Counted from the first letter of the stretch, positions 9,468 to 63,900 are shown. The stretch: 64,000 nucleotides of DNA from Macrostomum lignano (GCA_002269645.1 NIVC01000065.1:1-64000); one strand, 5' to 3'. Numbers and translations are program-made. Notes: generated by a model not told the origin, from the sequence alone.

Positions 9468-11046
<1,579 letters not shown>

Positions 11047-40463: not shown

Positions 40464-41906
40464 TCACTTCCGCCCGATCCTGTCAAATATGGCAGCGACG
40501 GAATTAATAGATGCGCGTGGATTCAACTGTCTGCATCTTCCGCACCAAACGTAATTTAAAATATTGTTGAATTGGCTCCGAGTTAAACGCCTCCGACGAG
40601 GACAAACTACAACTAAAAAGAATGACAAAATAATCAGAATTGTAATTATCGACATGGGTACTTCAAAAAGAAGACTGTTGCTGGCTGACTCCTTAGAATT
40701 TGAAGCACTTGTTGTTGATGCATTTCGGCAGAACTTGGTCAATGTTAAAATACACTGGTTCAATTCCTTTGAGCCCATACTGACAGGTGCCGGGTTGGCA
40801 AAGCTCAGCAGGGATCTCATAGGGGTGCTACAATCCGAAAACGCGAGCTCCAGGGTTTTGCTGCTACCAATCTTCAGAGAGCCGCACTGGACGCTTGACG
40901 GCTCAGATCTGAAGGTTGAGCAAATTGGCAAACATAGGTATACTTATCAGTACATTGTAGAAATTTATCGTGTGTAATTGTACCTCGAGATTTCGGAGCC
41001 TTACCTGGATTCCTGACTCGGGTTTTCAAATCGTAAATTTAACTGCGCTGCAGAAATTCGTTCGCAGTTTGAGTCCCAAACCGAATCAGAGCAGCGAAAA
41101 ACTCCGAATCTCACGCGTCTGCTCGAATCCAGTGGCATCGCATCTTCAAGCGCATCTGCAATGCGTCAGTATGAGCACAAAACATCAGTTGAGCACAAAA
41201 CATCTGTATGAGCACAAAACATCAGTATGAGCACAAAACATCAGTATGAGTACAAAATATCAGTATAAGCACAGAACAGAATGATAACTTTTGGGTTGCC
41301 GTGCGCTTTGCGATTTGCGTTTTCACCCACTTCCTCAATTATCTATCTTTTTCAGCACTGTACCCATGAGCAATGACCAGCATGAGCAACAGCTCAGCAC
41401 TGTACCCATGAGCAATGACCAGCATGAGCAGCAGCTCAGCACTGTACCCATGAGCAATGACCAGCATGAGCAGCAGCTCAGCACTGTACCCATGAGCAAT
41501 GACCAGCATGAGCAGCAGCTCAGCACTCACTGTCCCTCATCAGCTCATCCAGCTGCTCCTTCCCGGAGATCGCAGCCAGCTCAACTCCAGTTCCGCTCAG
41601 ATCCGACAGCCGCAGCTCCGAGTCGGAGATGAAGAGGCAGCGGCCCCGATGCAGCAGCATGTGCCTGCCGCAGAAGCCCTTCTTGGCCACCGCGATGGTC
41701 AGCTCGATGCGCCCGCAGCTCGCGCTCGGCTCGGAGTCGCCCGTCGAAAACCGGACCGTCAGCAGCTGCGAGCTGCAGGACAGAAACACATCGGACCAAC
41801 ACAGTCAGTCAGCGCAATGTTACATAAACTAGTCAAGAGGCCACCAGCTGCTTTTAAATGCAAAATCAGAATAATACCTGTTGGTCACAGGGACTACCAA
41901 GGGTGC
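40464..41906 (-). pseudogene. CUB/C-type-lectin/TM receptor copy 1, 5'-truncated: partial B 41878-41906, C 41531-41772, D 41005-41155, E 40464-40908
   Basis: Exons C-D-E splice in frame with GT-AG sites and encode a TM helix plus RRRR; similarity to exon B stops at 41906 and no exon A is present. Confidence 0.7.
41354..41525. repeat. 42-bp minisatellite (agcactgtacccatgagcaatgaccagcatgagcagcagctc); also at 43660-43770, 49070-49465, 54540-54848 and 61497-61570
   Basis: Same unit immediately follows the exon C donor in all five receptor copies, with variable copy number. Confidence 0.95.
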
Positions 41907-42517
41907 ACCTCCGTAGCGTCTTCTGCTGTAACACACATTCCACTTTGTGACGAATATTTGATCTGACGTAATTGAGTTCGCGTGCTAACGGGCTGCTACA
42001 TGTACGCAAATTAGTGACGAACACGTAGAAGCTTGATTGTGATCGATGACGAACTGGCCGATTATTCAATTATTTGTATTTTCTCTCAAACATGGATGTT
42101 AGTAGTATAATAATCACATAAAACTGATAGCAGACAAACAATCGAATCAGGTTGGGGTGGTTTCGGAGGTTATGATCTTGTGGGAAAACACGGTACTTAG
42201 GTTGGGCGCAGTTCTATATCTGGCGGGTAGCGTTCATTAATAATGCTTGCAGTAATGAACTTGCTAGCACGCAAAAAATACAAAGCGTACAAAAGTTACA
42301 CTTCAGACAGAGGGCTGACGGAGTGAACAGCCGTTCTAAAAAATACGCAAAAAAAAATTGTATGACGTCATCACAACTGACGTCATCACAAATAAATTGT
42401 GATGACGTCAGTTTTAGCAGTCAGGTAACTCAGGTAAGTCAGGTACTCACCATACTTTTTCATATGGCACCGATCGTCTCTTTCCAGAACAAACATAGTG
42501 TGATTTAAAATCAACAA

Positions 42518-44576
42518 CTAAGATCTTAAAGGGATTCCAGACAATGAATCAAAGGGTTTGGACCTTCTAGATTTGCGACGACGTCCTTGTCGCTTAAAAA
42601 CAAAAAATTTAACAGCAACTACCAGAATCACGGCCAACACTAGCAGTGAGACTGTCACAGACACAAATAAAGCTATCAGATCAGTTTTATCTGAACTGTC
42701 CGTTTCTTTATCAGTTGATTCTTTAAAAATCACATGCATGCTCAAATCTTTACAGCTGGTTATTGTGGATTCCAAGCAGTTGGAGTTGTGTTGCAAATCT
42801 TGATTGATTGGCTCAATTAGGAAGCTCAGCAACAGATGCTGCGGCTGGTCGCAATCAATGAATGACAATTTTAGTTTCTCCGAATCGTCAGGTTCAGCAC
42901 TGATTGATGCGCAGTCTACCTGTGATGAGATGGACTGGTTCCTGGAATGATTAATTAGGTAATATGGTGTTTACATTTTCTTAAACAGCCAAGGACTGCC
43001 AATAACAGCCAGGAATCACTCAGGTAGCCAAGGACTCATTGGGAATCGCTCAGGTAGCCAAGGACTCAATGGGAATCGCTCAGGTAGCCAAGGACTCAAT
43101 GGTAATCGCTCAGGTAGCCAAGGACTCAATGGGAATCGCTCAGGTAGCCAAGGACTCAATGGGAATCGCTCAGGTAGCCAAGGACTCAATGGGAATCGCT
43201 CAGGTAGCCAAGGACTCATTGGGAATCGCTCAGGTAGTCAAGGACTCAATGGGAATCGCTCAGGTAGCCAAGGACTCAATGGGAATCGCTCAGGTAGCCA
43301 AGGACTCAATGGGAATCGCTCAGGTAATCAAGGACTCAATGGGAATTGCTCAGGTAGCCAAGGACTCAAGATACAGTCTTTAGCGTGAACTTAAAATCAT
43401 AGCCCTGTACGTCTATGGAACGAAAAGCAACGAACCGTCGAGTAAAGGACTCCTGAGCAGCCCCAGTCGTGCTGAAATTCCCGATCACGCACAAACTGGA
43501 GCTCACTGTCTGTGCAACCTGCGTCCATTGAATGATTTTGTTGCAACGAAACACCGCCACTCTCACAGGTCTGGTCAGGTTTAAGGGTCTGATGAATGGG
43601 TGCGCGTTCGTTCTGTCATCATCTGAAATAACGGCGGTTATAAACTGTACACTTGAGCAATACCAGCATGAGCAGCAGCTCAGCACTGTACCCATGAGCA
43701 ATGACCAGCATGAGCAGCAGCTCAGCACTGTACCCATGAGGAATGACCAGCATGAGCAGCAGCTCAGCACTCACTGTCCCTCATCAGCTCATGCAGCTGC
43801 TCCGTCCCGGAGATCGCAGCCAGCTCAACTCCAGTTCCGCTCAGATCCGACAGCCGCAGCTCCGAGCCGGAGATGAAGAGGCAGCGGCCCCGATGCAGCA
43901 GCATGTGCCTGCCGCAGAAGCCCTTCTTGGCCACCGCGATGGTCAGCTCGATGCGACCGCAGCTCGCGCTCGGCTCGAAGTCGCCCGTCGAAAACCGGAC
44001 CGTCCGCAGCTGCGAGCTGCAGGACAGAAACACACCGGACCAACACAGTCAGTCAGCGCAATGTTACATAAACTAGTCAAGAAGCCACCAGCTGCTTCTA
44101 AAAGCAAAATCAGAATCATACCTGTTGGTCACAGGGACTACCAAGGGTGCCTTCGGCGGCAGGTCCCGATTGTGCCATGCCTTGCTGAAGCTGGATCCTG
44201 CAAAGTGCAATCCATAACTGAGTCATTAATTACTCATAATATTCACTCTTGACCTCCGCCATGACCTTGAATCCAGCTTGCCTGTCAGTTCCACCGTGAG
44301 GCTCCAATCGCAGCTCGGTGGATTGCCATCGGGCATCGCCGCCTCAGATCCGCCTCTTTTCCGAGCGATATTCAAGATGAAATTGCCCGGCTCGATCAGG
44401 TTGGCCGGCGGTTTCACTTCCCATAGGCAGGTCTGCGATGCAGTCAATTCGCTCTGGTCCCTGTTGCGTGTGTCCAGGGTTACCGTCTCGCCGTCCCTCA
44501 GTTTCAGCTCATATCCTGAACTGTAGCACTGGTGCAGCTCAGCGAGTGCCCTGGGGAACAGATAGTGCGCAAGCAT
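42518..44576 (-). CDS. CUB-like + degenerate C-type lectin type I membrane protein, copy 2: complement join(42518..42941,43436..43622,43775..44016,44122..44197,44282..44576), 407 aa
   Basis: Continuous frame over five exons, with a GC-AG first intron. CUB-like C...CLWEV...CDW.L...VRFSTGD; CTLD-like C..H...RCLF...LAAI, VRVAVF, C-x-C; TM LIALFVSVTVSLLVLAVILVVAV followed by a basic stretch. The D exon donor is the least certain site. Confidence 0.72.
43010..43370. repeat. Intronic minisatellite, 30 bp (gggaatcgctcaggtagccaaggactcaat)
   Basis: Only in the D-E intron of copy 2. Confidence 0.95.
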
Positions 44577-45799
44577 GAAGGTGGATGACACGTATGGCCC
44601 GTTCTTTATGGATCAGATCTAAGCAGCAAATCTGGTTGGCTGTCAAGGAAGCCAGTGTTAATAATTAAAAAAGAACAAACTTCAAATTCCATTAGCTATG
44701 AAGGCTTTCTTTTCTTTTCTTTTCTTATACATCATACTTTCTGCATCAGAAAAATAACACTAGCAGTTCGATGCAAGTGCCTCCCCATTTCCAAAGCAAT
44801 TTTTGCTAATCCCAAACCATAATAATGCAATCCTCACTGGTCGTATTGCTCACATTACATTGAGAACCAAGTGCTTACTTACCATCGAATTTGAGTCTGA
44901 GCTACCACGATGAGCAGGAGAAATGCAAGTAGTTGTTTGCTGCACATCTGAAGCAGATTTTAATAAAATGCTACTGAAAAATTGCTAGAACTAATAAACT
45001 AATTACCTAATCAACTACTGCTATTTGCAGACTAACTAAACAGACAATTTACAATTACAAAGCAATTTTTAAACGTTAAAAAGCAATCAAATGTGTATTA
45101 TAACAACAAAAAATAAGACTCTAAAGACTTGTGCTAATTTGAATTCCGCAGGGTTTTGGCCAGTGCCGATAGAAAGTTACACCCTCAGAATTCAAACACC
45201 AATCTGATGTCGGCTGAAATATTCCAAGAAATGCGATACATACAGCTCTGAATCCCTCCCTCATGCGCGCACTTTTCAGATAATGCCCACTGCGCTGCCT
45301 TTCCGTCTTCTGTCGGGAGTGTCTGGCAGAGAGGCGCCAGACTGTTTTGCGCGGGCGCTGTAATGCCTGCTACAAAGCACGTTATTGTTTCCATCTTTAG
45401 TCAGTCCATTGCTGGCTACACTGTACAGTGTAAATTTTCTGAGTAGTATACTTTCAGGAGAGTGTAGCCTATGACAGTACCAAACACCGTCTTTCTACAA
45501 ACAAACGAATGCACTTGACAGTTTAGTAGGCTACGTCTACACTGCATGCACTGTACAGAGTTGGTGGACATTCGCAAATTGGAGCGATATTTTTGTTTAT
45601 CTCGATTGGCTAGGATTATTTTTTGGTCAGGTGGTGGGGATCTGAAGACAGGTGGACTTGATTGACTTGACTCGGCTTAGCTGCAGAGGCTATGTCGTAC
45701 ACTGCATGCACTGTACAGAGTTGGTAATGTGTGGGGATTTGTAGACAGGTGGACTTGGCTTGGCTTGTCTTAGCTGTAGGGGGCACCAACTGCAGAATA

Positions 45800-46150
45800 A
45801 TCTAGAACACCCGTTTCGCGAGCCCCTGACGACAGATAGCTACCATCGAAGTGATGTCGCTCAGGGGGGGGGTCAAGTGTCTCGCCTACAGCGCGGTCCT
45901 TTTCACCGGCGGTGGGGAAGAATTCAGCTCGTCCCGTATCCCTGAGGTACCGGGTGAGCAGCGGTATTCTCTCGGGCTTGCGAACATCGGAGAGAACCGC
46001 GTTTGGCCAGACTTGAGTGAGTCTGGCCTGGTGAAGACCACCCGGTAGTGCCAGACAAAGTGCTCAGCGTTTTCACTGGGTCAGCGATAAAAGTGGTGAG
46101 AAAAGATACCTTCGGTTGAGCCTAAGGAGGGGGGGACAGGGGACGGCCTT
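45800..46150 (-). mobile_element. Short LINE 3' remnant related to the 38.5-39.5 kb element; duplicated at about 51615-51965
   Basis: ENAEHFVWH and LTRYLRDTGRAEFFP align with EDAQHFVCH and LIQFLWATRRATFFP. Confidence 0.55.
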
Positions 46151-46509
46151 AAGACAGGTAAAGATCAACATAGCTCGTAGCGCTGATTGCACAGACCAGC
46201 TCCCTGTTCTACGTATTTGGAGTCACTATTCCATGTGAGTACAAGTGAGTGATTAGCGCAGCCCTCTATGGTGCAGTTTCGCTTTCAATTAGCTACTGAT
46301 GCTGGGTTGAATCACTGAGTTACACATCGTGAAATGTGACAGGAGTGTGACAACTTTTTGTAGCAGATGATGCTCACTATACAATAAAATATTTACATGA
46401 AATTCATCCATAAGTGCAGTTAAATTTAGCGGTAAAATTATCAAAAAATGACAACATAAAAGAAGCATCATTTCAAAAATGAAGCATTATGTCGAACATA
46501 AACCATTAA

Positions 46510-46930
46510 TTTGGGAATTGCTGCGATGTCAGAGCTTAGGGGGAATTGCTGAGATGTCAAGACTTATGGGGAATTGCTGAGATTTCAAGGCTTAGAGGGG
46601 AATTGATGAGATGTCAAGACTTATGGGGAATTGCTGAGATTTCAAGGCTTAGAGGGAAATTGATGAGATGTCAAGGCTTATGGGGAATTGCTGAGATTTC
46701 AAGGCTTAGGGGAAATTGATGAGATGTCAAGGCTTAGAGGGGAGTTGATGAGATGTCAAGGCTTAGAGGGGAATTGATGAGATGTCAAGGCTTAGAGGGG
46801 AATTGATGAGATGTCAAGGCTTAGGGGAAATTGATGAGATGTCAAGGCTTAGAGGGGAATTGATGAGACGTCAAGGCTTAGAGGGGAATCACTGCGATGT
46901 CAAGACTTACAGTGGAATTGCTGAGATGTT
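46510..46930. repeat. 29-30 bp minisatellite (gaattgatgagatgtcaaggcttagagggg); longer paralog at 52320-52890
   Basis: Tandem array in both duplicated blocks with different lengths. Confidence 0.93.
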
Positions 46931-47519
46931 AAGACTGAAAGTTCAGAAGCGACATGCATTTTATTCAAAAATATTTATTCTTCTTTTTGTTGGCTCCCCA
47001 AAGGGGAGGGCGATTGCTAGTATAAGCTAAAATTATTGAACGCTTTCTCTATACGTGCGCAGGTACTACTTACACGAGTAATAACGTTGACAAATTCTCT
47101 TTGAGTACCAGGGCCGGTCCAGACTTCTATCGTCACTTTTACCGATTCAGACAGCATGAAAATTCAACGATATCAATTCGAATTTAAAATGCAGAACAAG
47201 TTTCTCATAGCGTCCTCTGCTGTAACACAGATTCCACTCTGCAAGACTACAACAGCCGAGCCCCAAGAGACATCACCTCCCAAGCCACAAAATTTAAAAA
47301 GTTAAATAAAGTATTGCCAACCACCTTCAGCAAACATAAAAGTACAACCCATTGAAGTAACCCAAAATACACATTAAATATTCCCAGCGAATACCAGCTG
47401 AAGAACTGGGGAGACAAAGGAACTGTCAACGTCACAATTTAGGCCAATAACTCAACTAGCATTGATATCAGTAGTTTGTCAAAAGTGCGAAAATCCTATC
47501 CTTGGTTATAAAGTAAATT

Positions 47520-48225
47520 CTGTAAAAAATACGCAAAAGATACAAAGCGTACAAAAGTTACACCTCAGAAAGAGGGCTGTACGGAGCAAACAGCCTTTCT
47601 AAAAAAATATGAAAAAATACGAAGCGTACACAAGTTACACCTCAGAAAGAGGGCTGTGCGGAGCAAACAGCCTTTCTAAAAAAATATGAAAGAATACGAA
47701 GCGTACACAAGTTACACCTCAGAAAGAGGGCTGTGCGGAGTAAACAGTCTTTATGTAAAAATATGAAAGAATACGAAGCGTACACAAGTTACACCTCAGA
47801 AAGAGGGCTGTGCGGAGTAAACAGTCTTTATGTAAAAATATGAAAGAATACGAAGCGTACACAAGTTACACCTCAGAAAGAGGGCTGTGCGGAGTAAACA
47901 GTCTTTATGTAAAAATATGAAAGAATACGAAGCGTACACAAGTTACACCTCAGAAAGAGGGCTGTGCGGAGTAAACAGTCTTTATGTAAAAATATGAAAG
48001 AATACGAAGCGTACACAAGTTACACCTCAGAAAGAGGGCTGTGCGGAGTAAACAGTCTTTATGTAAAAATATGAAAGAATACGAAGCGTACACAAGTTAC
48101 ACCTCAGAAAGAGGGCTGTGCGGAGTAAACAGTCTTTCTATAAAAATACGCAAAAATACAAGGTGTACAAAAGTTACACCTCAGAAAGAGGGCTGTAAAA
48201 AGTAAAGAGCCTTTCTATAAATATA
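47520..48225. repeat. 77-bp tandem repeat (aagttacacctcagaaagagggctgtgcggagtaaacag...); short copies at about 42270-42350 and 53500-53670
   Basis: Period 77 measured between 47709 and 47786; lies just downstream of the E exons of copies 2, 3 and 4. Confidence 0.92.
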
Positions 48226-48375
48226 TGCAACTCATGCTCATGCTCATGAAAACACACGCTATTACAATACATAAGGAAACGCACTTGCGGCGAATCGAGC
48301 CACCAATAAAATAGTGTGTATAGCTGACTGCTGTGATTGCCAGTTGTTTGAAGGTCTATAAAAAAGCTGCTAGTT

Positions 48376-50310
48376 TCACAGTAGTGAAGTACATGTACAT
48401 CGACGAGTAATTGTGGGACTGAGCCGCCGACGCCTCAGTACGAGTATTAGCACAAAAGCTGCCACCATGACTAAAATAATAAAAACCACTCCAGCAATCC
48501 AACTATGATCAGTAATCGTATTGCCATTCAGCAACGGATACCGACAGACAGATTGCACTAGATGACCACAGTTGCTCTTCTCGCCGACTGCAGCTGTGCC
48601 ACCGTTGAAGCTCAGCAGGGACTTCATCGGCGAGTTGCAGTCGAAGAAGGCGAGCATCCAGCTTCCTTTGTTGGTTCGGCGCACGGAAGCGCAATGCAAA
48701 CTTGACGATGGCGAGCTTCTGTGTTGGAGTTGGCATTGTGCATGGTTTTTTTGTGCTGGGTTATGGTTTACACTAAAAGTACCAGCTATATATAAACAAC
48801 TTGATTAGATACAAATACTGAAATCATTAGAAAAAAATCAAACCTCAAACGCTGATGCTCTTCTAGAACTGTGTAGTTAAAGTCTTTAGGGACACACTTT
48901 CCTTCGCTGGAGTTCCAGTACCTCGGCTGCTTTGAGCCCGCACAAAGAAACACACCGACTCTCACTGGACTGCTCAGATCCAGTGACTCGGCATGCTCAT
49001 CTGCAATTTGAAGCCCAGGTAAATCCTATCAGAGATATCAAGTTCAAGCAGCAGCACCTAGAAATACCAGTATGAGCAGCAGCTCAGCACTGTACCCATG
49101 GGCAATGACCAGCATGAGCAACAGCTCAACACTGTACCCATGAGCAATGACCAGCATGAGCAGCAGCTCAGCACTGTACCCATGAGCAATGACCAGCATG
49201 AGCAGCAGCTCAGCACTGTACCTATGGGCAATGACCAGCATGAGCAGCAGCTCAGCACTGTACCCATGAGCAATGACCAGCATGAGCAGCAGCTCAGCAC
49301 TGTACCCATGAGCAATGACCAGCATGAGCAGCAGCTCAACACTGTACCCATGAGCAATGACCAGCATGAGCAGCGCTCAACACTGTACCCATGAGCATTG
49401 ACCAGCATGAGCAGCAGCTCAACACTGTACCCATGAGCAATGACCAGCATGAGCAGTAGCTCAGCACTCACTGTCCCTCATCAGCTCATCCAGCTGCTCC
49501 TTCCCGGAGATCGCAGCCAGCTCAACTCCAGTCCCGCTCAGATCCGACAGCCGCAGCTCCGAGTCGGAGATGAAGAGGCAGCGGCCCCGATGCAGCAGCA
49601 TGTGCCTGCCGCAGAAGCCCTTCATGGCCACCGCGATGGTCAGCTCGATGCGACCGCAGCTCGCGCTCGGCTCGAAGTCGCCCGTTGAGAACCGGACCGT
49701 CAGCAGCTGCGAGCTGCAGGACAGAAACACACCGGACCAACACAGTCAGTCAGCGCAATGTTACATAAACTAGTCAAGAAGCCACCAGCTGCTTCTAAAA
49801 GCAAAATCAGAATCATACCTGTTGGTCACAGGGACTACCAAGGGTGCCTTCGGCGGCAGGTCCCGATTGTGCCATGCCTTGCTGAAGCTGGATCCTGCAA
49901 AGTGCAATCCATAACTGAGCTATTAATTACTCATAATATTCACTCTTGACCTCCGCCATGACCTTGAATCCGACTTGCCTGTCAGTTCCACCGTGAGGCT
50001 CCAATCGCAGCTCGGTGGATTGCCATCTGGCATCGCCGCCTCAGATCCGCCTCTTTTCCGAGCGATATTCAAGATGAAATTGCCCGGCTCGATCAGGTTG
50101 GCCGGCGGTTTCACTTCCCATAGGCAGGTCTGCGATGCAGTCAATTCGCTCTGGTCCCTGTTGCGTGTGTCCAGGGTTACCGTCTCGCCGTCCCTCATTT
50201 GCAGCAGGTGTCCTGAGCTGTGACACTGGTGCTGCTCAGCGAGTGTCCTGCATGGGGAACAGTTAGTGCGCAAGCATGAAGGCGGATGAAATGTATGGCA
50301 CGTTTTTCAT
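48376..50310 (-). pseudogene. Receptor copy 3: A to 49979, B 49819-49894, C 49472-49713, D 48844-49000, E 48376-48718; signal-peptide region disrupted
   Basis: Exons splice in frame, but TAT is changed to TAA (50263-50265) and there is a 4-nt length gain relative to copy 2 just after the ATGs at 50310 and 50277. Confidence 0.65.
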
Positions 50311-53300
50311 GAATCAGATCTAAGCAGAGTGTAATTAATGAAAAATGCTTCAAATTCCATTAGTTATGAAGGCGTTTTAAAGTTCCTTCATACTACAAAA
50401 TTGTCAGTTCTGTCAAAGTGCCCTTTATTTTATCTGACATTAATTTTTTCTTAATTTTGGATCCACTATATCTATTAATTCTAAAACTGTACTGTACACC
50501 TCACAGCCACTCAAAGACCATTTAAGTCAAATATTTTAAATCACTGATGCCTTTCTGCATCAGAAAAATAACACTAGCAGTTCGATGCAAGTGCCTCCCC
50601 ATTTCCAAAGCAATTTTTGCTAATCCCAAACCATAATAATGCAATCCTCACTGGTCGTATTGCTCACATTACATTGAGAACCAAGTGCTTACTTACCATC
50701 GAATTTGAGTCTGAGCTACCACGATGAGCAGGAGAAATGCAAGTAGTTGTTTGCTGCACATCTGAAGCAGATTTTAATAAAATGCTACTGAAAAATTGCT
50801 AGAACTAATAAACTAATTACCTAATCAACTACTGCTATTTGCAGACTAACTAAACAGACAATTTACAATTACAAAGCAATTTTTAAACGTTAAAAAGCAA
50901 TCAAATGTGTATTATAACAACAAAAAATAAGACTCTAAAGACTTGTGCTAATTTGAATTCCGCAGGGTTTTGGCCAGTGCCGATAGAAAGTTACACCCTC
51001 AGAATTCAAACACCAATCTGATGTCGGCTGAAATATTCCAAGAAATGCGATACATACAGCTCTGAATCCCTCCCTCATGCGCGCACTTTTCAGATAATGC
51101 CCACTGCGCTGCCTTTCCGTCTTCTGTCGGGAGTGTCTGGCAGAGAGGCGCCAGACTGTTTTGCGCGGGCGCTGTAATGCCTGCTACAAAGCACGTTATT
51201 GTTTCCATCTTTAGTCAGTCCATTGCTGGCTACACTGTACAGTGTAAATTTTCTGAGTAGTATACTTTCAGGAGAGTGTAGCCTATGACAGTACCAAACA
51301 CCGTCTTTCTACAAACAAACGAATGCACTTGACAGTTTAGTAGGCTACGTCTACACTGCATGCACTGTACAGAGTTGGTGGACATTCGCAAATTGGAGCG
51401 ATATTTTTGTTTATCTCGATTGGCTAGGATTATTTTTTGGTCAGGTGGTGGGGATCTGAAGACAGGTGGACTTGATTGACTTGACTCGGCTTAGCTGCAG
51501 AGGCTATGTCGTACACTGCATGCACTGTACAGAGTTGGTAATGTGTGGGGATTTGTAGACAGGTGGACTTGGCTTGGCTTGTCTTAGCTGTAGGGGGCAC
51601 CAACTGCAGAATAATCTAGAACACCCGTTTCGCGAGCCCCTGACGACAGATAGCTACCATCGAAGTGATGTCGCTCAGGGGGGGGGGTCAAGTGTCTCGC
51701 CTACAGCGCGGTCCTTTTCACCGGCGGTGGGGAAGAATTCAGCTCGTCCCGTATCCCTGAGGTACCGGGTGAGCAGCGGTATTCTCTCGGGCTTGCGAAC
51801 ATCGGAGAGAACCGCGTTTGGCCAGACTTGAGTGAGTCTGGCCTGGTGAAGACCACCCGGTAGTGCCAGACAAAGTGCTCAGCGTTTTCACTGGGTCAGC
51901 GATAAAAGTGGTGAGAAAAGATACCTTCGGTTGAGCCTAAGGAGGGGGGGACAGGGGACGGCTTTAAGACAGTTGAAGAAGGTGAAGACTAGCATAGATG
52001 GCACAGACCCCTGTTCCATTAGGAGTCACTATTTCATGTGAGTACAAGTGAGTCATTAGCGCAGCCCTCTATGGTGCAGTTTCGCTTTCAATTAGCTACT
52101 TTTGCTGGGTTGAATCACTGAGTTACACATCGTGAAATGTGACAGGAATGTGACAGATTTTTGTAGCAGATGATGCTCATTATACTATAAGACATTTACA
52201 TGAAATTCATCCATAAGTGCAGTTTAATTTAGCGGTACAATTATCCAAAAATGACAAACTAAAAGAAGCGTCATTTCAAAAATAAAAGAAGCATTATGTC
52301 GAAAAAAAACGATTAATTTGAGAATTGCTGTGATGTTAGGGCTTAGGGGGGGGAATTGATTAGATGTCAAGACTTAGGAGGGAATCGATGGGAGTTCAAG
52401 GCTTAGGGGAAATTGATGAGATTTGAATGCTTAGAGGGGAATCGATGAGATGTCAAGGCTTAGGGGAAATTGATGAGATGTCAAGGCTTAGGGGGAGTTG
52501 ATGAGATGTCAAGGCTTAGAGGGGAGTTGATGAGATGTCAAGGCTTAGAGGGGAATTGATGAGATGTCAAGGCTTAGAGGGGAATTGATGAGATGTCAAG
52601 GCTTAGGGGAAATTGATGAGATGTCAAGGCTTAGGGGGAGTTGATGAGATGTCAAGGCTTAGAGGGGAGTTGATGAGATGTCAAGGCTTAGAGGGGAATT
52701 GATGAGATGTCAAGGCTTAGAGGGGAATTGATGAGATGTCAAGGCTTAGAGGGGAATTGATGAGATGTCAAGGCTTAGAGGGGAATTGATGAGATGTCAA
52801 GGCTTAGAGGGGAATTGATGAGATGTCAAGGCTTAGGGGGAATTGATGAGACGTCAAGGCTTAGAGGGGAATCACTGCGATGTCAAGACTTACAGTGGAA
52901 TTGCTGAGATGTTAAGACTGAAAGTTCAGAAGCGACATGCATTTTATTCAAAAATATTTATTCTTCTTTTTGTTGGCTCCCCAACGGGGAGAGCGATTGC
53001 TAGTATAAGCTAAAATTATTGAACGCTTTCTCTATACGTGCGCAGGTACTACTCACACGAGTAATAACGTTGACAAATTCTCTTTGAGTACCAGGGTCGG
53101 TCCAGCCTTCTATCGTCACTTTTACCGATTCAGACAGAATGAAAATTCAACGATATCAATTCGAATTTAGAATGCAGAACAAGTTTCTCATAGCGTCTTC
53201 CGCTGTAACACAGATTCCACTCTGCAAGACTACAACAGCCGAGCCCCAAGAGACATCACCTCCCAAGCCACAAAATTCGAAAAGTTAAATAAAGTATTGC

Positions 53301-53707
53301 CAACCACCTTCAGCAAACATAAAAGTACAACCCATTGAACAAACCAAAATACACATTAAATATTCCCAGCGAATACCAACCGAAAAACTGGGGAGACAAC
53401 GGAACTGTCAACGTCACAACTTAGCACAAGAACTCAACTAACATTGATATCAGTAGTTTGTCAAAAGTGCGAAAATCCTATCCTTGGTTATAAAGTAAAT
53501 TCTGTAAAAAATACGCAAAAAATACAAAGCGTACAAAAGTTACACCTCAGAAAGAGGGCTGTACGGAGTAAACAGCGTTCTGTAAAACATAGGCAAAAAT
53601 ACAAGGGGTACAAAAGTTACACCTCAGAAAGAGGGCTGTACGGAGTAAACAGCCTTTCTATAAAAATATGAGTATGCAACTCGGGTTCGTTTTTAGCAGC
53701 AGCAAAG

Positions 53708-56500
53708 TCAGAGCCTTGACCCACCCTCTGCACCCGTTTCAGTCCAGATCGGAACATCTGAAACGGAAAATTCAAATAAAAACTTGTCAATATCTGTCTT
53801 TGCAAGCTGAGTTAGAATATAAATAAAAGCATAATTATGGACACAACACAAGTACTGTAAACCAACCTTACGGATTCTTGAGTGGCACATGCACACACTA
53901 CTAATAGCAAAAGTTATGTACAGCGCGATCAGGAAAGCGACGATTAACTTCTGTCCAGATTTGCCAGTTGTCCGGGAGTTCGGTGGAATTCTGTGGATGG
54001 AGTTTGCCCCACATACTCGTAATTGATGTACATGTAGCCAACAGTTTCTTGTTCTCACTTTGCCCGACACTGAACCGACTGGAGTCTCGCTGAAGCTGAG
54101 CAGTGAGAGCATCTTCGCTCTGCATGAGCAGCTGTGCAGCCCAGCTCTGCCTTCAGGATCAACTTGCAAGGCTGTGCACCGAGTGTCGGCAGTGAGATTT
54201 CTACAGCCAGTGAAAAGCAGGGATGTAATCATTTATCATTCTGCTTGATCTTTTCCATTCAGTGAGCGAGTGTTCAACCTATGACGAGGTTAATTATTTG
54301 GTGTTATATCAATAAATTGTGTAAGATAGAAAATCTGCTGACCCTTTAACTGTCAGATCTGAAGCGGCAGTTGAGTTGAAACGTTCCCGTGAGCACAAGC
54401 TGCTAGTGAAGTTGAAATGGACAGAAAAAGTCCTTAAGGCAGAACAGCGAACAACTCCCACTCTTGCTTGTTTGCTCAAGTTCAGCGGCTTGAGAAATGG
54501 GTATTGTTCGGCCCTGCGTTCGTCTGAAATTGAGAAAAGCAGCAGCTCAGCACTGTACCCATGAGCAATGACCAGCATGAGCAGCAGCTCAGCACTGTAC
54601 CCGTGAGCAATGACCAGCATGAGCAGCAGCTCAGCACTGTACCCATGAGCAATGACCAGCATGAGCAGCAGCTCAGCACTGTACCCATGAGCAATGACCA
54701 GCATGAGCAGCAGCTCAGCACTGTACCCATGAGCAATGATCAGCATGAGCAGCAGCTCAGCACTGTACCCATGAGCAATGACCAGCATGAGCAGCAGCTC
54801 AGCACTGTACCCATGAGCAATGACCAGCATGAGCAGCAGCTCAGCACTCACTGTCCCTCATCAGCTCATCCAGCTGCTCCATCCCGGAGATCGCAGCCAG
54901 CTCAACTCCAGTTCCGCTCAGATCCGACAGCCGCAGCTCCGAGTCGGAGATGAAGAGGCAGCGACCCCGATGCAGCAGCATGTGTCTGCCGCAGAAGCCC
55001 TTCTTGGCCACCGCGATGGTCAGCTCGATGCGACCGCAGCTCGCGCTCGGCTCGGAGTCGCCCGTCGAGAACCGGACCGTCAGCAGCTGCGAGCTGTTGA
55101 AGAGATGGGCATGTAGACATCATTACGAGCTCTAGAGTGCATTTTATAATCAGCCACAGGCTTAAAGTGTTTATACTATGGAACTCACTTGTGCATTACT
55201 GACACGATAAATGGAGCCTTTGGAAGATTCGTTCCATTCCTCCAGGTCTTGCGGAACTCCGTGTCTTTAAGCGGTATATAGCCGATCTAAAGTCAATTTC
55301 TTAAAGTCATACGTACTTTTGAACTCATATATTTTGCTTTCCAAAAACTTTGCTTCTGTGACAAGCTTTCTAAGAACTGTCGTTATGCGAAAAAATTCCT
55401 AGCCACTTCGTTGCACTGAACTCGTCATCTCGTCTGAGAGCTCTGAGATCTCTCATCTATCGACAACTCTGATATGTAAAACTCTCAGCTGTCTTCTACG
55501 GAGATATTAGGATTTTTTCTGAATGAATATCTGCTAAGCGTCGTCAAAAGAATGGGTGAAGAAGCTTTAACATCTGGGACCACTCATCACGGAGAATGGG
55601 ACACCGGAGGAAGAGATCAGAATTCGAATCTAGGCGTCTCAACCAGCTCAATGATAAGGCTTGATGAACTTCACAAAGGCGGTCATTTGAGTAACACTGC
55701 TCTGTGGTTGCGAGAGCTGAACTCTGGGGAAGAGAAGTGTGGAGACATTCAAAGCATTTGAAATGAAATACTACATAAGAGTGCAAAGGATTTCATGAAA
55801 AGAGAAAAAGACAAATGTCTGGTTTCCGAGAAAAATGGAGGAGGTATAGGGATAGGAACCAGAACATGTGGAGGAGATCATCAAGCAGACAAAGCTAAAA
55901 TATTACTGACATCAGACGTGGCAGAAGGGAGATATCTGTATTCAAGGCAAGAAGAAGGAAGAAATGACGGCTACGGCAAAGAAGAAAAACAAGAAGGTTC
56001 GTCAGAATGGTTCACTGACTATCGTAGCCTCTTCACTTGTGCCTATGCAGCTGGCACCCTACAGAAGCTATTCAGTTGAGGTGGCAATTCTCGCAGGCCC
56101 GCCTCCTAATTCCTAATTTGATACTGATTGCTTCCGTGTCGCTGCCATCAATGCTGCGGAGCCCCTATAACTCACCTTTCAGCTCCGCTGTCAGCTCAGA
56201 CGGACATCCGGGTCCGCTTGCAGCAGCACCCGGTCGGCGGTGGCCGAGCCGAAGCGACAGCATGAGCTGCAGCGGCTGAGTCATGCGGCCCAGCCTCACC
56301 TCCCAGCTGCATCGCTGCGATGAGATGAGTCCGTTCACCTCCCTGTGGTTGGTGAGCAGAGTCTCAGGCTGGTCTGAGTCAGCGTTCATTGAGAATGCCT
56401 TGATGCTGTCCTGGATGCAGTAGTGGTGAGCAGCCTCGCAGCTGATGATGAAGAGGCTGACAAACGCTGGAGCTGCGAGAAGCGGCCAGCTCCAGGCCAT
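53708..56500 (-). CDS. Receptor copy 4, apparently intact: complement join(53708..54200,54343..54523,54852..55093,55189..55264,56176..56500), 438 aa
   Basis: Clear signal peptide MAWSWPLLAAPAFVSLFIISCEA, CUB-like C...CSWEV, 76-nt exon B and 242-nt exon C as in copies 2/3, TM LIVAFLIALYITFAISSVCMC; all introns GT-AG. Confidence 0.75.
55555..56020 (+). mobile_element. Decayed RTE-clade LINE fragment in intron A-B of copy 4
   Basis: HLGPLITENGTPEEEIRIRI and LLCGCES*TL...FKAFEMKYY...IS*KEKKTN match the RTE RT C-terminal consensus. Confidence 0.7.
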
Positions 56501-58219: not shown

Positions 58220-59003
58220 TGTAATAATAACGAGGTCCTCCAAGAGGGGCGTCTTCTTCTAGAATTAACAGAATCGGAGTCGTGTGCTCCTATCGGTTAA
58301 TCTAGGATAACCAAATCAATCAACTCGATAATCCTCTAAGGGTATCGGAATCGGTCCGCAGATCCTATCCAATCCCTTAGGAAAATTGGAGGCCTCAAAT
58401 TCAATAGTCTCAGTGAAATCAACTGAACAGTAACGGCCGGCAATAAATCGCTCTCAAAAAATCAATTCAATAACAAAGGCTCGAACAAGAGCTTACCGAA
58501 CGGTAGGTAGTTCCTCAGAGATGTAGCCTCGCTTAGCTGTTGCAGCAAGCTCCAAGATCTTCAGAGGCTGCTCCGAGTCTGAGATTTTTAGCTCGGACTT
58601 TTGCTTGTATTTATAGGAAAAATTCTTGAACAACAGATTATTTTTAGTAGGTGACAGTTTAGCGCTTTGGAAATTGACCCCTATGGAATACATTAGCTTT
58701 GAGCGCCGATACCATATTCGGAGTTCTAAATTTAAATGTTGCAAAAGATGGTCATTTGTTGCTTTCGTGGTCTTAAAAATAGAGTGTGACAATTTGCAGT
58801 TTTTAGCGTTCAGGTTTTTTGCATCTTTATGTTGCTACTTATAGTAGTCTACTTTGTATCTTATCTGGAGATCCCTACAGCCACTCTATTCGCTACTGAG
58901 CAATTTCTCTTGGACTATTCTGAAATAAAAGATGTGAGAAAACTAATCGGGGTAGTTTTAATCCGTTTAACCTTCGCACACCGCTCCCCCCACTTCATTC
59001 CTC
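58220..59003 (-). mobile_element. Possible 3' LTR remnant (58220-58980) with polypurine tract
   Basis: Minus strand: purine tract GAGGAATGAAGTGGGGGAGCGG directly before TGT...ACA ends, with TATA-like ctataaata inside; no TSD or second LTR found. Confidence 0.4.
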
Positions 59004-59474
59004 AACTCGAGTCTGCCGCGGCGTAGCTGAGTTGCGTCACTCGCAAGATTGAGAGACTTTAACCTGCACTCTCAAAAGTGGCGACCACAGACCGAATCTT
59101 CTGTGATGGCGACTTTTCAATGTTGCTTAGTATACATTTATGTATATTTTACGTCTGAATAAGCATTGTTTAATTCGTTTACAAAAAAAGTTTTGTTTAG
59201 GTCATTACCCAATGCAGACAAAGACAAAAAAGACAAAAAGCACGAATATTAGCAACTACGAGTAAAACGACCAGAAAAAATATTAATTAAAAAACAGCAA
59301 AATAAAAATTTGTATTGCATCTTCAGTGATCGAGGCAATTAAACAGGTGTCATGACAAGCATGCAAAAAGCAAGCGTTATATTTTCATAGAAAATTCCTG
59401 CAGAAGGGATTGCTGAATAATAAATGAGATATTGCACACTTTACTCGTATAGTTTCCTTAGAGTAGTATAATAA

Positions 59475-59695
59475 GGTCGCCATCATAAATTCGAAAAATC
59501 ACAACTCCGAAAAGACTTCCCATCACAAACCCGAAATATCAAACCCGAAATATCATAACTCCGAAAACCAAAATAGTGTTGGACATTGCTAGAACTTTCG
59601 TAGTTATGATATTTCGGGTTTATGATGGGCAATTGTTTTTGTTTTCCAAGATATGATATTTTGGTTTTGTGATTTTTCGGTTTTGTAATGCCCCC
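59475..59695. mobile_element. Mutator-like fold-back MITE
   Basis: Imperfect long inverted arms (cgaaaaatcacaa / ttgtgatttttcg; cccatcacaaacccgaaatatc / gatatttcgggtttatgatggg), G...C ends, flanks gtataataa and gtataatag. Confidence 0.7.
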
Positions 59696-60300
59696 GTATA
59701 ATAGTTACGTTGATAGTTTGTGCTTTCTTAGAAATTGCCATGTTTAAATAATCGCCTAAATTTTCGTTTAACTGTTTAACTTATAATTTATTCATATTCT
59801 GTAAGCAAAATTTGTTAGAATTTTTCTCAAAGAATAGTATAAACTGAAGACCGAGAAGGGGCTAGAAGAACCAACTCACCTACTCACCGCTCGCTTATAT
59901 TCTTCCAACTTTGTAAAGTTAATTAAACTCGATATTTGCAGTTTTAAAAGACTTTGATCATTTCCTTTGAAACCCCAAAATTAGGCGAATTGAGAACCAT
60001 TTAGAAACGAGACATATCTCAGTAGTCTGCAGTAAACAATCGCCTTAGAGCGGTATAAATCACCTACAGCCATGAATCCCATATGGGAGCAAATAGGAAA
60101 AAAGGAACAGGGTTGACAGCCCCACATATAGCCGCTCAGGCCAGTAAATAGTACAGTACATAGTACACACCTAGCACTAGCACAACTTTGGTGGCATTGG
60201 TGAAATTTTAGTGTCAACGGTAATTTTAGTGTCCAGTGCTACTACAACTTTAGTGTCAGCTTTTTGGGATTATTTTCAAAGACAGAACGATACCCCTACT

Positions 60301-60500
60301 CAGTGGCGGGTCTAGAGTTTCATTTTGGGGAGAGGGCGGTCCAAGTTTGGGGCGCCAGCACGAGTATAAGGGGCGCCAGTTTTTAAGCTAGGGGCGCAAA
60401 AATGCATATAGAGGGAGAAAAATCAAGATTAGGGGCGCAGTAAATGCGTGTAGGGGGCGAAAAGTCAAGCTTAGGGGCGCAAGAAGTGCGTGCGTGTATG
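60301..60500. mobile_element. One end of a probable hAT-type MITE (CAGTGGCGG.TCTAG plus ggggcgc subterminal repeats)
   Basis: Typical terminus motif and repeated AGGGGCG units; the other terminus was not found. Confidence 0.4.
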
Positions 60501-60660
60501 GAGGTTAAACTCCAATATGTTGCCAATCTATCCATCTGTGATAGATCCTGGCACCGATTTATACGGACCCAATCTCTCACTATTTAAAGTACTGTCTGGG
60601 TGGCTTGCCTAGCGTTTAGTTCATTCCTCGTGCTAATAACTTTGTTTTACTGCCTTAAAA

Positions 60661-63241
60661 TTAGACTTTAGCTGTTTCAACTTGGTAATCGTCAAATTCG
60701 TGTTTGGCGATACAAGACGCGTGCCCTTCGCTCTTCATCTCGCAGTGTGCAGCAGGAACCTCTCCAGTGCTCATCCGTCTATTTTGCTGTTCGAATCCTT
60801 CCGCATTAAATTGACCTCGCCGACGGTAATAAATATATCTAATTATTATCCCCATGAGCATCGCAACTAAACATACGATGGTTATAACTACGAACAGGTC
60901 AATAGAGCCATTTCTAAACTGTTTCTCCTGCAACTGCTGACTAAAAGTTCTGTCCAGGAAATTCTTCAGGCAGTTGTTCGCACCTGCAGCAAGAGATTCA
61001 TTTGAGGGGCTCTCGGGAAAGCTCAGCAGAGACCTGGCTGAGGACCTGCAGCTCGAGAAGTTGAGCTGATCAGTCGAGAATCCGGCAAGCATCAGCGATG
61101 CGCACTGCACTGATTGGCCAGAATCCCAAAGTCCTGGCTCCCTGCCAGTTCAGGAGGGACTGTCGTTGATGATTCTGCGAATTTAAACGGTATTGATTCG
61201 AGAAGTCGTCCTATATTGTCACTTACCTAACCAGAAGATAAAGTTCTTGGGCATCTCTGGGGCTGATTAGGGCAACTGAGCACGAGCCAGCGGCATTGTC
61301 CAGAAAAAACATTCTGCCTGACGATACATTGTAGAACAGTCCGACTCTGACTGGGACTTGGCTTAGGTCCAGAGGCATGAGGAATGGGTAGCGATACTGT
61401 CTCTGTTGATCTGAAATATGCATGAAATGATACAAAGCTGGGAACTTAACATTAGTGATACGGAGGCATAAAAGCAGCTCGGCCTGGTACCACGAGAAAT
61501 GACCAGCATGAGCAGCAGCTCAGCACTGTACCCATGAGCAATGACCAGCATGAGTAGCAGCTCAGCACTCACTGTCCCTCATCAGCTCATGCAGCTGCTC
61601 CGTCCCGGAGATCGCAGCCAGCTCAACTCCAGTCCCGCTCAGATCCGACAGCCGCAGCTCCGAGTCGGAGATGAAGAGGCAGCGGCCCCGATGCAGCAGC
61701 ATGTGCCTGCCGCAGAAGCCCTTCTTGGCCACCGCGATGGTCAGCTCGATGCGACCGCAGCTCGCGCTCAGCTCGTCGCTCGTCGAGAACCGGACCGTCA
61801 GCAGCTGCGAGCTGTTAAGCATTACAGGCAATAATTACATTGCTCAGCTGTCCCACAGTTGGTAAGCTTAAGTGCTTACACTGCAAGTACAGTACTACGA
61901 AACTCACTTGTTCATCACTGAAACAACCAATGGAGCTTGCGGCAAATTCGTCCCATTCTTCCAGGTCTTGAGGAACCCGGAGTCTAAGTTGTACGAGGTT
62001 TACGCGAATAGGGACTGAACTTTCTGTATTTAACAAAAACGTTTTGTGCTCTGAAAAGTCGCACCTCATTGCAGACCTTAATTTTATTTCTGAAGCTACG
62101 AGTATAGACTTTACACTAAAGTAACTAACTCTCACCGAAGTTCTTGGGAGCACGAGAAGTTCCCGCAGACGAATCGTTCGCCGAGATTTGCCCGTGGAGA
62201 TTTGCCCGCCGAGATTTGCCCGCCGAGATTTTCCCGCCGAGATTTGCCCGCCGAGATTTTCCCGCGGTGCATTTGCCTGTGAGCGAATTTCCCGCGATGA
62301 TTTGCCCGCTGAGGTTTGCCGGTAATGCATTTTTCCTGCAGAGCATTTGGCAGCTAGATTTTGTCTGTACGCTCGTATTATCCCCCCCCCCAAGAAAAAA
62401 GTTATGAATTTGATATGAAGTTACGATGAAAACGTTTTGATCGTGTAAATCTCTTTATAAAGATTTATATGTACTAAGGATTGGGAAGGCAATGCAGACA
62501 AAATCTGCCGGGTGGCCAAATGCGCTGCAGGAAAAAGAATTGCGGGCAAACCTCGGCGGGAAAAAACTCGGCGGGCAACTCTCTCGCGGGCAAATTGAAC
62601 TGCGGCAAATCTCAATGGACCCGAAGTTCTTACCTAACTACCTAACTACCTCAAATCCTAGCCAACTCTCAGAACTGCGCTTCTACGTGCACATAGTACG
62701 AGTACTAGTACGAGCTAGAATTGCAAGTCCGTGTGGTCTTTTCTAAATTTTGGCCAACGCTTTCTCTTTCATTGTTTCTGCTTATGCGTGTTTATTCGTC
62801 TTGGAGAGTCTGGGGTAGACAGCTCTTCACTATGGGGAACAGCAGTTTTACCCTCGGCAACCTCAGTTGGATTTTTATGAATTATCCTGGTGCCCTGTTA
62901 AAGGCTAAAGGTAAGTGGGAAAAGTATGAAGGCTACTCGTGTCGCTGCCATCAATGCTGCGGAGCCCCTATAACTCACCTTTCAGCAGCGCGGTCAGCTC
63001 AGACGGACATCCGGGTCCGCTCGCAGCAGCACCCGGCTGACGGTGGCCGAGCCGAAGCGACAGCACGAGCTGCAGCGGCTGAGTCATGCGGCCCAGCCTC
63101 ACCTCCCAGCTGCATCGCTGCGATGAGACGAGTCCGTACACCTCCCAGTGGTTGGTAAGCAGAGTCTCCGGCTGGTCTGAGTCAGCGTTCATTGAGAACG
63201 CTTTGATGCTGTCCTGGATGCAGTAGTGGTGAGCAGCCTCG
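60661..63241 (-). pseudogene. Receptor copy 5: A 62979-63241 (signal peptide missing in window), B 61908-61983, C 61573-61811, D 61227-61410, E 60661-61141
   Basis: B-C-D-E splice in frame, and C has an in-frame 3-nt deletion. Similarity to copy 4 exon A ends abruptly at 63241, 62 nt short of the ATG, at a LINE remnant. Confidence 0.65.
62146..62622. mobile_element. Mutator-like MITE (477 bp) in intron A-B of copy 5
   Basis: Perfect 9-bp TSD GAAGTTCTT (62137-62145 and 62623-62631), GGG...CCC ends, long imperfect inverted arms built of gagatttgcccgcc units. Confidence 0.88.
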
Positions 63242-63900
63242 ATCCTTAAGAGTGGATTTCATTGCATTGCTTCCATCAGAAGAATGAATTTGAATAAAAT
63301 TTAGAATGCATGAAGGTTTAGAATCTGAATATGCAAAATGAGGCACTCTTGATTTGATGTGAGTTTTTAATATTGGAATTAAGTTAAGCGCTGTCTTATT
63401 CCAAAGGGAAGTTGCTATGAGAATGAAGATCCAGGATGTCGGTTCATCGTACGCACGTCGTACATACGGTTTGGCTACTGTTTGTAGTTAAGATCTATTT
63501 GTAAGTTTTATGTGAGTCACGTTCGTGTCTTCCACTGTGATGAAACTTTTCCAAGGTTGGCGGAAGACTATCAGAATAGCTGCAGAGTTTGATGCCGATA
63601 TGCAGAAGGATACTGCATACCACATTGGATTGTTGCTCTTCGGCCGGGGCGGATCCAGCAGAAGTTCATCATGAGATGAACAGGTTGATCAATCAGCATT
63701 GGTGTCCATTTAACTCCTGGGTCTTTCAGCCTGCTCTAGGAAGGCGGAGAGTTCCTTAGACCAGGGCAACCTTTGGAGACATGCCAATATGCAGACAGAG
63801 AGACGACTCTTGAAGCTGCATGCGGCGGGAACAACAAGGCAGGCAGACCTTGTCGAAGGCATTGTGCTGAATACTTGTGAATGATCCTGTTGTGTACCAT
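63242..63900 (-). mobile_element. Highly decayed CR1/L2-like LINE 3' fragment
   Basis: Minus-strand remnants AFDKV, ATSLWNK and IKSRV in the expected order, with many stops and frameshifts. Confidence 0.5.

Follow-up and report, generated by a model that had tools for sequence, protein, structure and literature searches.

How can one exon be almost the same in every member of a gene array when the exons downstream of it have diverged beyond alignment? This question is raised by a family of receptor-like genes in the flatworm Macrostomum lignano, found in tandem on contig NIVC01000065.1 of assembly GCA_002269645.1 (Mlig_3_7); bases 1-64000 of this contig, 64,000 nucleotides (nt) in all, are hereafter called the window. 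The array consists of five minus-strand paralogs (c1 to c5) arranged head-to-tail, of which four are complete and one, c1, is 5'-truncated; their exons are designated A to E. It is probably the product of partial concerted evolution, in which gene conversion and non-allelic exchange acted on an old tandem receptor array. Genomic comparisons were made within this one assembly and with one partly overlapping duplicate of the array region, contig NIVC01000064.1 (L002). The five units were compared pairwise at the DNA level by blastn, and synonymous and non-synonymous divergence (dS and dN) was estimated by the Nei-Gojobori method.

The exon at the center of the question, exon C, is 242 nt long and 96.3-97.5% identical to its c2 version among the five copies. 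All ten pairs differ by 5-8 nt (dS 0.016-0.067, dN 0.006-0.03), and c1 and c2 by exactly 6 of 242, a figure that an earlier note on this DNA had put at about six when it described the exon as nearly invariant. Private substitutions occur in each copy, and the variants form a star-like pattern; informative sites are few, giving three pairs, of which two fail the four-gamete test. In every copy the exon C donor is the starting point of a minisatellite with a 42-nt unit, which comprises 2.3-9.6 units (97-403 nt) and takes up most of the C-D intron. Downstream of this 42-nt array, pairwise blastn of the five units found no match in any pair.

The latter result agrees with the earlier description of exons D and E as unalignable at the DNA level and related by shared motifs. 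Their products are 19-34% identical in all pairs, with dS ranging from 1.3 to unbounded, i.e., saturated. Taken alone, D and E are still homologous (BLASTP E values of 9e-7 and 1e-5) and have in common the invariant cysteines, an LLSF motif, an NC motif and a transmembrane segment followed by a basic stretch. They had been called hypervariable, but recent diversifying selection is not shown by the data. The two exons are just old, the D-E cassettes being about as distant from each other (29% amino acid identity) as from unlinked members of the family (25%). Exon A falls into two types, c2/c3 and c4/c5, with 27-30% amino acid identity and dS of ~1.15 between them; within subtypes its amino acid identity is 92%, and c4 and c5 are ~94-95% identical at the nucleotide level. 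The proposal that A and B are constant across the array has thus to be abandoned, only exon C and its minisatellite being common to all five copies. Exon B is 100% identical in c2 and c3; between c4 and c5 it is 76% identical at the nucleotide level, against 97% for exon C, and the A-B intron cannot be aligned. Groupings change along the gene, from (c2,c3)(c4,c5) in A to star-like in C and none in D/E. Incongruent exon histories with a breakpoint in the C-D intron had been anticipated, and the switch does lie in the minisatellite of that intron.

Could selection alone have kept exon C so uniform? An explanation of this kind, in which the exon is invariant through extreme constraint on its protein or nucleotide sequence and without recombination, can draw on the position of exon C, which covers a domain junction and the core of a lectin-like fold (see below), and on the coincidence of the identity edge with an exon boundary. 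It is highly improbable and already contradicted by the present data: conservation extends equally to synonymous and non-synonymous sites (dS 0.02-0.07, dN 0.006-0.03), the adjoining intronic minisatellite is homogenized too, and the same exon shows 22-61% amino acid identity across comparisons involving unlinked family members. The N-half of the lectin-like region (exon C) is 96% identical within the array, 26% between the array and unlinked paralogs and 44% among unlinked paralogs, the corresponding values for the C-half being 29%, 25%, and 32%. Since the N-half reaches only 44% and 26% outside the array, it is not intrinsically ultra-conserved in the family. With dS of 0.02-0.07 in exon C against values above 1 in the flanking exons, the near-identity is ascribed to recombinational homogenization and not to selection.

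The homogenized tracts have sharp edges. Between the subtypes (c2/c3 vs. c4/c5), only exon C and the 42-nt array match; identity opens at the CAG acceptor of exon C and closes at the 3' end of the 42-nt array, and the intron upstream of exon C is not alignable. The tract would start at the acceptor because this intron is no longer homologous, and a boundary at an exon edge is to be expected if conversion starts and resolves only where paralogs are still similar. Between c4 and c5, blastn matches cover exon C, exon A and a segment upstream of exon C with 85% identity. In c2 and c3, which had been reported as near-identical over A-B-C and 3 kb upstream with a switch in the 42-nt minisatellite, an identity of ~95% indeed runs from this minisatellite through exons C, B, and A, the signal-peptide exon and ~3 kb of upstream sequence; it vanishes at the 3' end of the 42-nt minisatellite, and the other edge is a minisatellite with a 77-nt unit.

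Base composition bears on how the tracts arose. GC content at third codon positions (GC3) reaches 0.86-0.90 in exon C, against 0.69-0.75 in A and 0.41-0.61 in D/E; a single-copy paralog has 0.60 in its exon C. This contrast is the footprint expected of GC-biased conversion. Amino acids whose codons are GC-rich (R, G, A, L) abound in the N-half of the array proteins, where non-adaptive change may have been driven by biased conversion.

The preferred account would run as follows. The paralogs are old, with D/E in all pairs and A/B between subtypes saturated at synonymous sites. Recurrent short-tract, GC-biased conversion, seeded in exons still similar enough, would have homogenized exon C and the C-D intron minisatellite in all copies, and exon A within each subtype. 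Larger non-allelic exchanges would have had their endpoints in minisatellites; one of them would have copied a 4-kb block, from the 42-nt array to the 77-nt array, between c2 and c3, so that the same 5' part came to be found on two unrelated D-E-transmembrane cassettes. The constant N-half on five C-halves would be a by-product of surviving homology in a repeat-rich, recently duplicated genome, in which 15% is simple or tandem repeat and duplicated blocks with at least 95% identity add up to 180 Mb (PMC5730564). Of the earlier proposal that a homogenized 5' module is set onto divergent D-E-transmembrane halves, the part concerning exon C and its array stands, but A and B form two old types and conversion is patchy and exon-centered. 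Conversion would be recurrent and ongoing, with minisatellites as exchange points; these are plausible in that role, yet they are ubiquitous in the M. lignano genome. No new kind of molecular mechanism is required by the data.

The units and their repeats, on which the following paragraphs depend, are located in the window as listed here.

40464..41906, minus strand: c1, 5'-truncated, with an open C-D-E frame; similarity to c2/c3 stops at 41906 inside exon B
41878-41906, 41531-41772 and 41005-41155, minus strand: c1 B remnant, exon C and exon D (spliced model)
40464-40908, minus strand: c1 exon E with transmembrane segment and stop codon (spliced model)
41352-41527 and 41166-41278: c1 42-nt minisatellite and an additional 19-nt minisatellite
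42269..42353, no strand: 77-nt minisatellite remnant between the c2 stop codon and the truncated c1 5' end
42518..44947, minus strand: c2, complete; D/E splice sites agree with GenBank P0001 (BOX15_Mlig005992g2)
44883-44947, 44282-44550, 44122-44197, 43775-44016, 43436-43622 and 42518-42941, minus strand: c2 signal-peptide exon and exons A, B, C, D and E
43644-43771 and 43012-43369: c2 42-nt minisatellite and a 30-nt minisatellite within the D-E intron
43644..47689, minus strand: c2 constant block, ~95% identical to c3 49341-53671
46513-46933 and 47536-48196: 29-nt and 77-nt minisatellites, upstream repeats of the c2 block
48376..50761, minus strand: c3, complete; D donor and E acceptor less certain than in other copies
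50697-50761, 49979-50247, 49819-49894, 49472-49713, 48844-49000 and 48376-48718, minus strand: c3 signal-peptide exon and exons A, B, C, D and E
49066-49468: c3 42-nt minisatellite
49341..53671, minus strand: c3 constant block, partner of 43644-47689
53500-53666: 77-nt minisatellite ending the c3 block, just 3' of the c4 stop codon
53708..56500, minus strand: c4, complete; D/E splice sites agree with the paralogous UniProt model P0002
56176-56500, 55189-55264, 54852-55093, 54343-54523 and 53708-54200, minus strand: c4 exon A with fused signal peptide and exons B, C, D and E
54538-54848: c4 42-nt minisatellite
60661..63244, minus strand: c5; D/E splice sites agree with GenBank P0004
62979-63244, 61908-61983, 61573-61811, 61227-61410 and 60661-61141, minus strand: c5 exons A, B, C, D and E
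61473-61569: c5 42-nt minisatellite

In the spliced models the intron phases are 1 (A-B), 2 (B-C), 1 (C-D), and 2 (D-E), as previously stated, and the C-D-E frames are open in all five copies. The statement that all five share an A to E architecture needs correction: in c1, only the last 29 nt of exon B are left and neither exon A nor a signal-peptide exon was found, and in c2 and c3 exon A is preceded by a separate exon for the signal peptide. In c4 the signal peptide is fused to A; for c5 the signal-peptide exon falls beyond the window end and is located in L002 (4519-4617), ~3.8 kb upstream of exon A. Exon C of c5 has a 3-nt in-frame deletion. The 77-nt remnant at 42269-42353, beside the truncated end of c1, matches 47531-47617 and 53513-53599 at 88-90%. 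Regarding splice sites, the phase-1 donor after exon A is of the GC type in c2 (CAG/GCAAGC, at 44282) and c3 (CAG/GCAAGT, at 49979), with no nearby GT donor of the right phase in either, and the equivalent donor in c4 and c5 is canonical (AAAG/GTGAGT). In all five arrays the 42-nt unit ends in GGGTACA followed by GTGCTGAG, and the true exon C donor reads GGGACA followed by GTGAGTGCTGAG; because the unit end echoes this donor, the array looks like a tandem duplication of donor-proximal intron sequence. All three minus-strand (coding-sense) frames of the 42-nt repeat units are open, and a retained intron stops after three codons (SEC*).

The units share orientation and intron phases, so that splicing between them is conceivable: exons of an upstream unit could be joined to the C-D-E or D-E exons of downstream units, making the latter alternative 3' cassettes, with the promoter-less c1 as a target. 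Such combination at the transcript level would account for the intact splice sites and open C-D-E frame of c1, which lacks 5' exons of its own, although the truncation of c1 may simply be recent. It would also fit the partial GenBank model P0001, which covers 7.4 kb (42518-49907), opens its coding sequence at exon B of c3 (49907) and continues with exon C variants, D and E of c2, as well as the long multi-gene precursor transcripts that M. lignano makes (PMC5730564). As c2 and c3 do not differ in exon B, the span of P0001 may represent either ambiguous read placement or a real c3-to-c2 splice. Each complete unit has a full exon set, unlike clusters of the protocadherin or UGT1A type, where the difference is that the "constant" exon of the flatworm array is physically repeated in every unit. 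Cross-unit splicing is considered very unlikely as the source of the pattern.

Are the junctions themselves real? The Mlig_3_7 assembly is redundant and repeat-rich (PMC5730564), and the junctions lie in tandem repeats, so that the identical exon C and minisatellite blocks might be collapses or mis-joins. This is extremely improbable, given the private substitutions in each of the five exon C copies and the shortness of the 42-nt arrays (97-403 nt), which are well within long-read length. L002, an independent contig, repeats the c5 unit at 99.7% over 6 kb, C-minisatellite-D junction included, and then the c5-c4 order, with a c4-like A-B-C at 94-97% after c5. The GenBank annotation was built from RNA-seq-guided transcript assembly (PMC5730564), and such models hold C-D-E of c2 and of c5, crossing the C-D junction in both. 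The junctions are therefore most probably not mis-joins. After the 42-nt minisatellite of its c4-like unit, L002 directly continues into a copia-like retrotransposon (17639-19518), in which a gag zinc knuckle (CYTCGKEGHFSRECR) and the beginning of an integrase can be read. Since the locus ends before any D-E cassette, L002 is silent on whether the combination of 5' part and cassette differs there.

Upstream of the c5-like unit, L002 contains a further unit, X, whose D-E cassette has 83-84% DNA identity with that of c5 and forms with it the sole unsaturated cassette pair. For this pair, dN/dS is 0.069/0.048 in D and 0.137/0.177 in E; these ratios (~1.4 in D, 0.77 in E) rest on 11 and 43 substitutions, respectively, and mean fast, weakly constrained evolution, within the limits of such small counts. 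Compared with window positions 60502-61569, unit X (L002 1-1264) also lacks 9 nt, in frame, after the transmembrane segment and a further 7 nt, whose loss changes the reading frame of the cytoplasmic tail.

The high ratios, particularly in D, could be taken as a sign of adaptive cassette shuffling, i.e., of a diversification system that recombines a constant scaffold with ligand-loop and transmembrane cassettes at minisatellites and generates new combinations between individuals or lineages. Several features of the array are in line with it: the D-E cassettes of c1 to c3 are flanked on both sides by minisatellites (42-nt on the 5' side, 77-nt on the 3' side), one 5' block is found on two unrelated cassettes in c2 and c3, and the variable part falls in the usual ligand-binding half of such domains. 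Neutral non-allelic recombination would produce every one of these as well, 15% of the genome being tandem repeat (PMC5730564), and minisatellites also occupy the same intron of a single-copy paralog. The cassettes diverged anciently and not recently, and the ratios depend on the few substitutions given above. UniProt models from the older ML2 assembly suggest further A/B/D-E combinations. In P0003, P0005, and P0006, exon C is joined straight to the E exon of c2 with D skipped, in a shifted frame that ends in RTSP(S/F)HHR*, and P0005 combines a type-II exon A with a third version of exon B and an E2-like end. Such joins could represent another genomic combination, exon skipping or assembly collapse at the repeated exon; P0002, P0003, and P0005 were set aside, as chimeric predictions, as evidence of other combinations. 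Repeat analysis and blastn comparison of the units revealed no conserved signals flanking the cassettes besides the minisatellites. Adaptive shuffling is thus judged unlikely, and nothing in the analysis points to active reshuffling or to an immune, allorecognition or chemosensory role of the kind that the earlier note had envisaged. That the D-E-transmembrane cassettes are genuinely exchangeable, by germline non-allelic recombination or cross-unit splicing, in combination with a scaffold maintained by conversion, is decidedly doubtful; if true, it would amount to a combinatorial, lineage-specific repertoire of lectin-like receptors, serving for example self/non-self, mate or microbe recognition.

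Partial concerted evolution remaining the preferred explanation, the nature of the proteins on which it acts can be considered. Each gene is predicted to encode a type I membrane protein with, in order, a signal peptide, an N-terminal beta-rich domain, a divergent C-type-lectin-like domain (CTLD), a short Cys-containing stalk, a transmembrane helix and a short basic tail, and this architecture suggests cell-surface recognition or adhesion receptors. The N-terminal domain is encoded by exons A and B and the first ~28 codons of C, the CTLD by the rest of C, D and the start of E. Exon C had been taken as the N-half of a CTLD, with which profile and fold searches agree, except that it also encodes the ~28 residues of the preceding domain. 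The assignment of C-D-E to the CTLDs is supported by a profile of 10 C-D-E sequences of the family, which matched 59 sequences in the PDB, all of them CTLDs, with CLEC4C (9.5e-5) and CD69 (1.7e-4) as best matches and DC-SIGN and type II antifreeze protein also among them. The match runs through the exon C part, and the C2...C3 region is aligned in a second, weak segment. Profiles from the five window copies alone matched nothing in the PDB, unlinked paralogs being needed in the profile. For one of the latter, P0009, the AlphaFold model made with the family alignment has a mean predicted local distance difference test (pLDDT) score of 65, most of the domain core scoring ~70-92 and the long loop low. 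The top 50 PDB matches listed by Foldseek for this model are all CTLDs (E 1e-5 to 3e-4, target TM score 0.54-0.67), LOX-1, Mincle, DCIR, and NKR-P1 being among those listed. According to the model, exon C would provide the N-terminal hairpin and both helices, with the C-D boundary at the end of helix 2; D would provide the strand equivalent to WIGL (VRVGVF) and the long loop, and E strands 3-5, the stalk, the transmembrane helix and the tail. This modeled layout is consistent with the earlier placement of the ligand-loop region in D and the start of E.

Hand-reading of the alignment shows an invariant C0-C0' pair (FCGRHMLLHRGRC) and an invariant C2...C3 pair (C290...C310 of c2), the pairings being putative. 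The partners of the C1-C4 disulfide (helix 1 to strand 5) are both absent in the same hand-read alignment, with no Cys in helix 1 and LLSF where FxCE would be expected. By-eye inspection of the five copies and paralogs, which did not include a dedicated scan, revealed neither EPN/QPD in the long loop nor WND in strand 4. Because the helix-1/strand-5 disulfide appears to be missing and no EPN/QPD/WND is visible, the domain is to be called lectin-like and not a demonstrable lectin. No signaling motif was seen by eye in the alignments.

Homolog searches, including an exhaustive HMMER search, found no homologs outside M. lignano; the latter retrieved the distant members P0009, P0014, P0015, P0016, and P0017 and the cluster members P0018 and P0019, all from this species, together with bacterial cadherin-repeat proteins treated as compositional noise. 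The exon structure recurs in a distant single-copy paralog, the C-D intron of which contains other minisatellites. With regard to the N-terminal domain, a C-x-W-E/I pattern and the strand layout appear CUB-like by eye, and a profile search against the PDB gave no CUB and only weak Ig-like matches (E 0.02-0.12). The CUB name given in UniProt to P0002, P0003, P0007, and P0017 was therefore unconfirmed by either Pfam or PDB profile search. Other labels were rejected since profile and fold searches gave only CTLDs, namely SPRY for c5 exon D (E 0.006, below threshold) and the "FHA domain-containing" names of P0005 and P0006 in UniProt; Pfam scans otherwise gave only sub-threshold transmembrane-like and SPRY noise.

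Several points weigh against the reading adopted here, as regards both the fold and the history of the array. Pfam Lectin_C gave no match even at E values up to 10, in window proteins and distant paralogs alike, nor did Pfam CUB with single exons, the five spliced proteins and the distant paralogs. The AlphaFold model of the window's own P0001, made from a shallow alignment, has a pLDDT of 48 and is unusable, so that the CTLD fold is carried over via the family alignment from a ~25%-identical paralog. The GenBank record contains no transcript-based model for c1, c3, and c4, and some copies may be pseudogenes for this reason. A single burst of exchange ~3-5% divergence ago would yield the same identity pattern; recurrence would depend on the GC3 footprint and on two site incompatibilities, both indirect. 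The tract edge at the exon C acceptor could alternatively reflect some sequence-level function of exon C. Conversion is deduced from the comparison of paralogs in a single assembly.

How does this array compare with known systems? Regionally restricted conversion has been described in dog CEACAM1/CEACAM28, with SIGLEC5/14 and KIR cited alongside (PMC2110893). As in these, a sharply bounded exon tract is near-identical between paralogs with diverged other exons, and receptors have one common extracellular part with different transmembrane parts and tails. The flatworm tract differs from that of CEACAM in comprising one 242-nt exon and an intronic minisatellite in at least five paralogs, not a pair, in covering half a structural domain instead of a whole ligand-binding domain, and in having saturated flanks, compared with 80-92% identity there. 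Paired receptors show the opposite arrangement to the array, in which the scaffold half is homogenized and the presumed ligand face has diverged. In the chicken BG (butyrophilin-like) region, hybrid genes are attributed to unequal crossing-over or deletion with expansion and contraction of the array (PMC4046983). As in the flatworm, the genes form a tandem array of one orientation, and their 5' and 3' parts differ in history. BG genes, however, are members of the Ig superfamily with two lineages each of 5' and 3' parts, whereas the flatworm array combines two 5' types with a single middle exon common to all units and no fewer than five unrelated 3' cassettes. For the human fetal globin genes, a gene conversion bounded by intronic simple sequence was reportedly described by Slightom, Blechl and Smithies in 1980. 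The likeness lies in a converted tract that ends at an intronic tandem or simple repeat, proposed as a recombination-prone boundary; the globin case is reported to concern two genes of recent duplication and a (TG)n microsatellite, while the array has several old paralogs and its 42-nt minisatellite is itself within the homogenized tract. In contrast to V(D)J and lamprey VLR systems, c2 to c5 are each complete and spliceable, with their own exon C. Regarding the protein, the family resembles the non-lectin CTLD receptors LOX-1, CD69, NKR-P1, and CD94/NKG2, which gave the best structural matches in the profile and Foldseek searches, in fold, putative hairpin disulfide, lack of an obvious Ca/sugar motif, membrane anchoring and gene clustering. 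Those receptors are type II proteins with all canonical disulfides, whereas the flatworm family is type I, has its CTLD after a beta-rich domain, appears to lack the helix-1 to strand-5 disulfide and is unrecognized by Pfam Lectin_C.

Tandem repeats are not confined to the array and make up 27% of window bases. One third of positions 1-40000 consists of long minisatellite arrays, e.g., 3718-5386 (24 nt, 70 units) and 5867-7358 (20 nt, 74 units), with further arrays at 8320-9373, 31845-33050, and 34823-35847. One 28-nt unit can be found at 9870-10685, at 19926-20447 and in an intron of an unlinked paralog (L003 14263-15397), from which it follows that at least one minisatellite unit family is dispersed. 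On the plus strand at ~34414-37382 the record calls a 533-residue PH-domain gene, the span of which includes the 35-nt array at 34823-35847. The 32-36 kb region has a very strong strand composition skew, with GC skew down to -0.69.

Most likely, the array is a very clean yet mechanistically ordinary example of partial concerted evolution, with no support for a programmed or adaptive diversification system. It can be regarded as a natural experiment, where a ~97% identical exon stands beside saturated exons with a GC3 footprint and a minisatellite at the tract edge, and is useful for learning how homology, GC-biased conversion and tandem repeats set the boundaries of conversion. It also bears on how much a structural domain will tolerate, since here one half is overwritten and the other is left to drift. 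Finally, it defines a Macrostomum-specific family of type I membrane proteins with a lectin-like domain unseen by Pfam, the expression and function of which are accessible since M. lignano is amenable to RNA interference and transgenesis.

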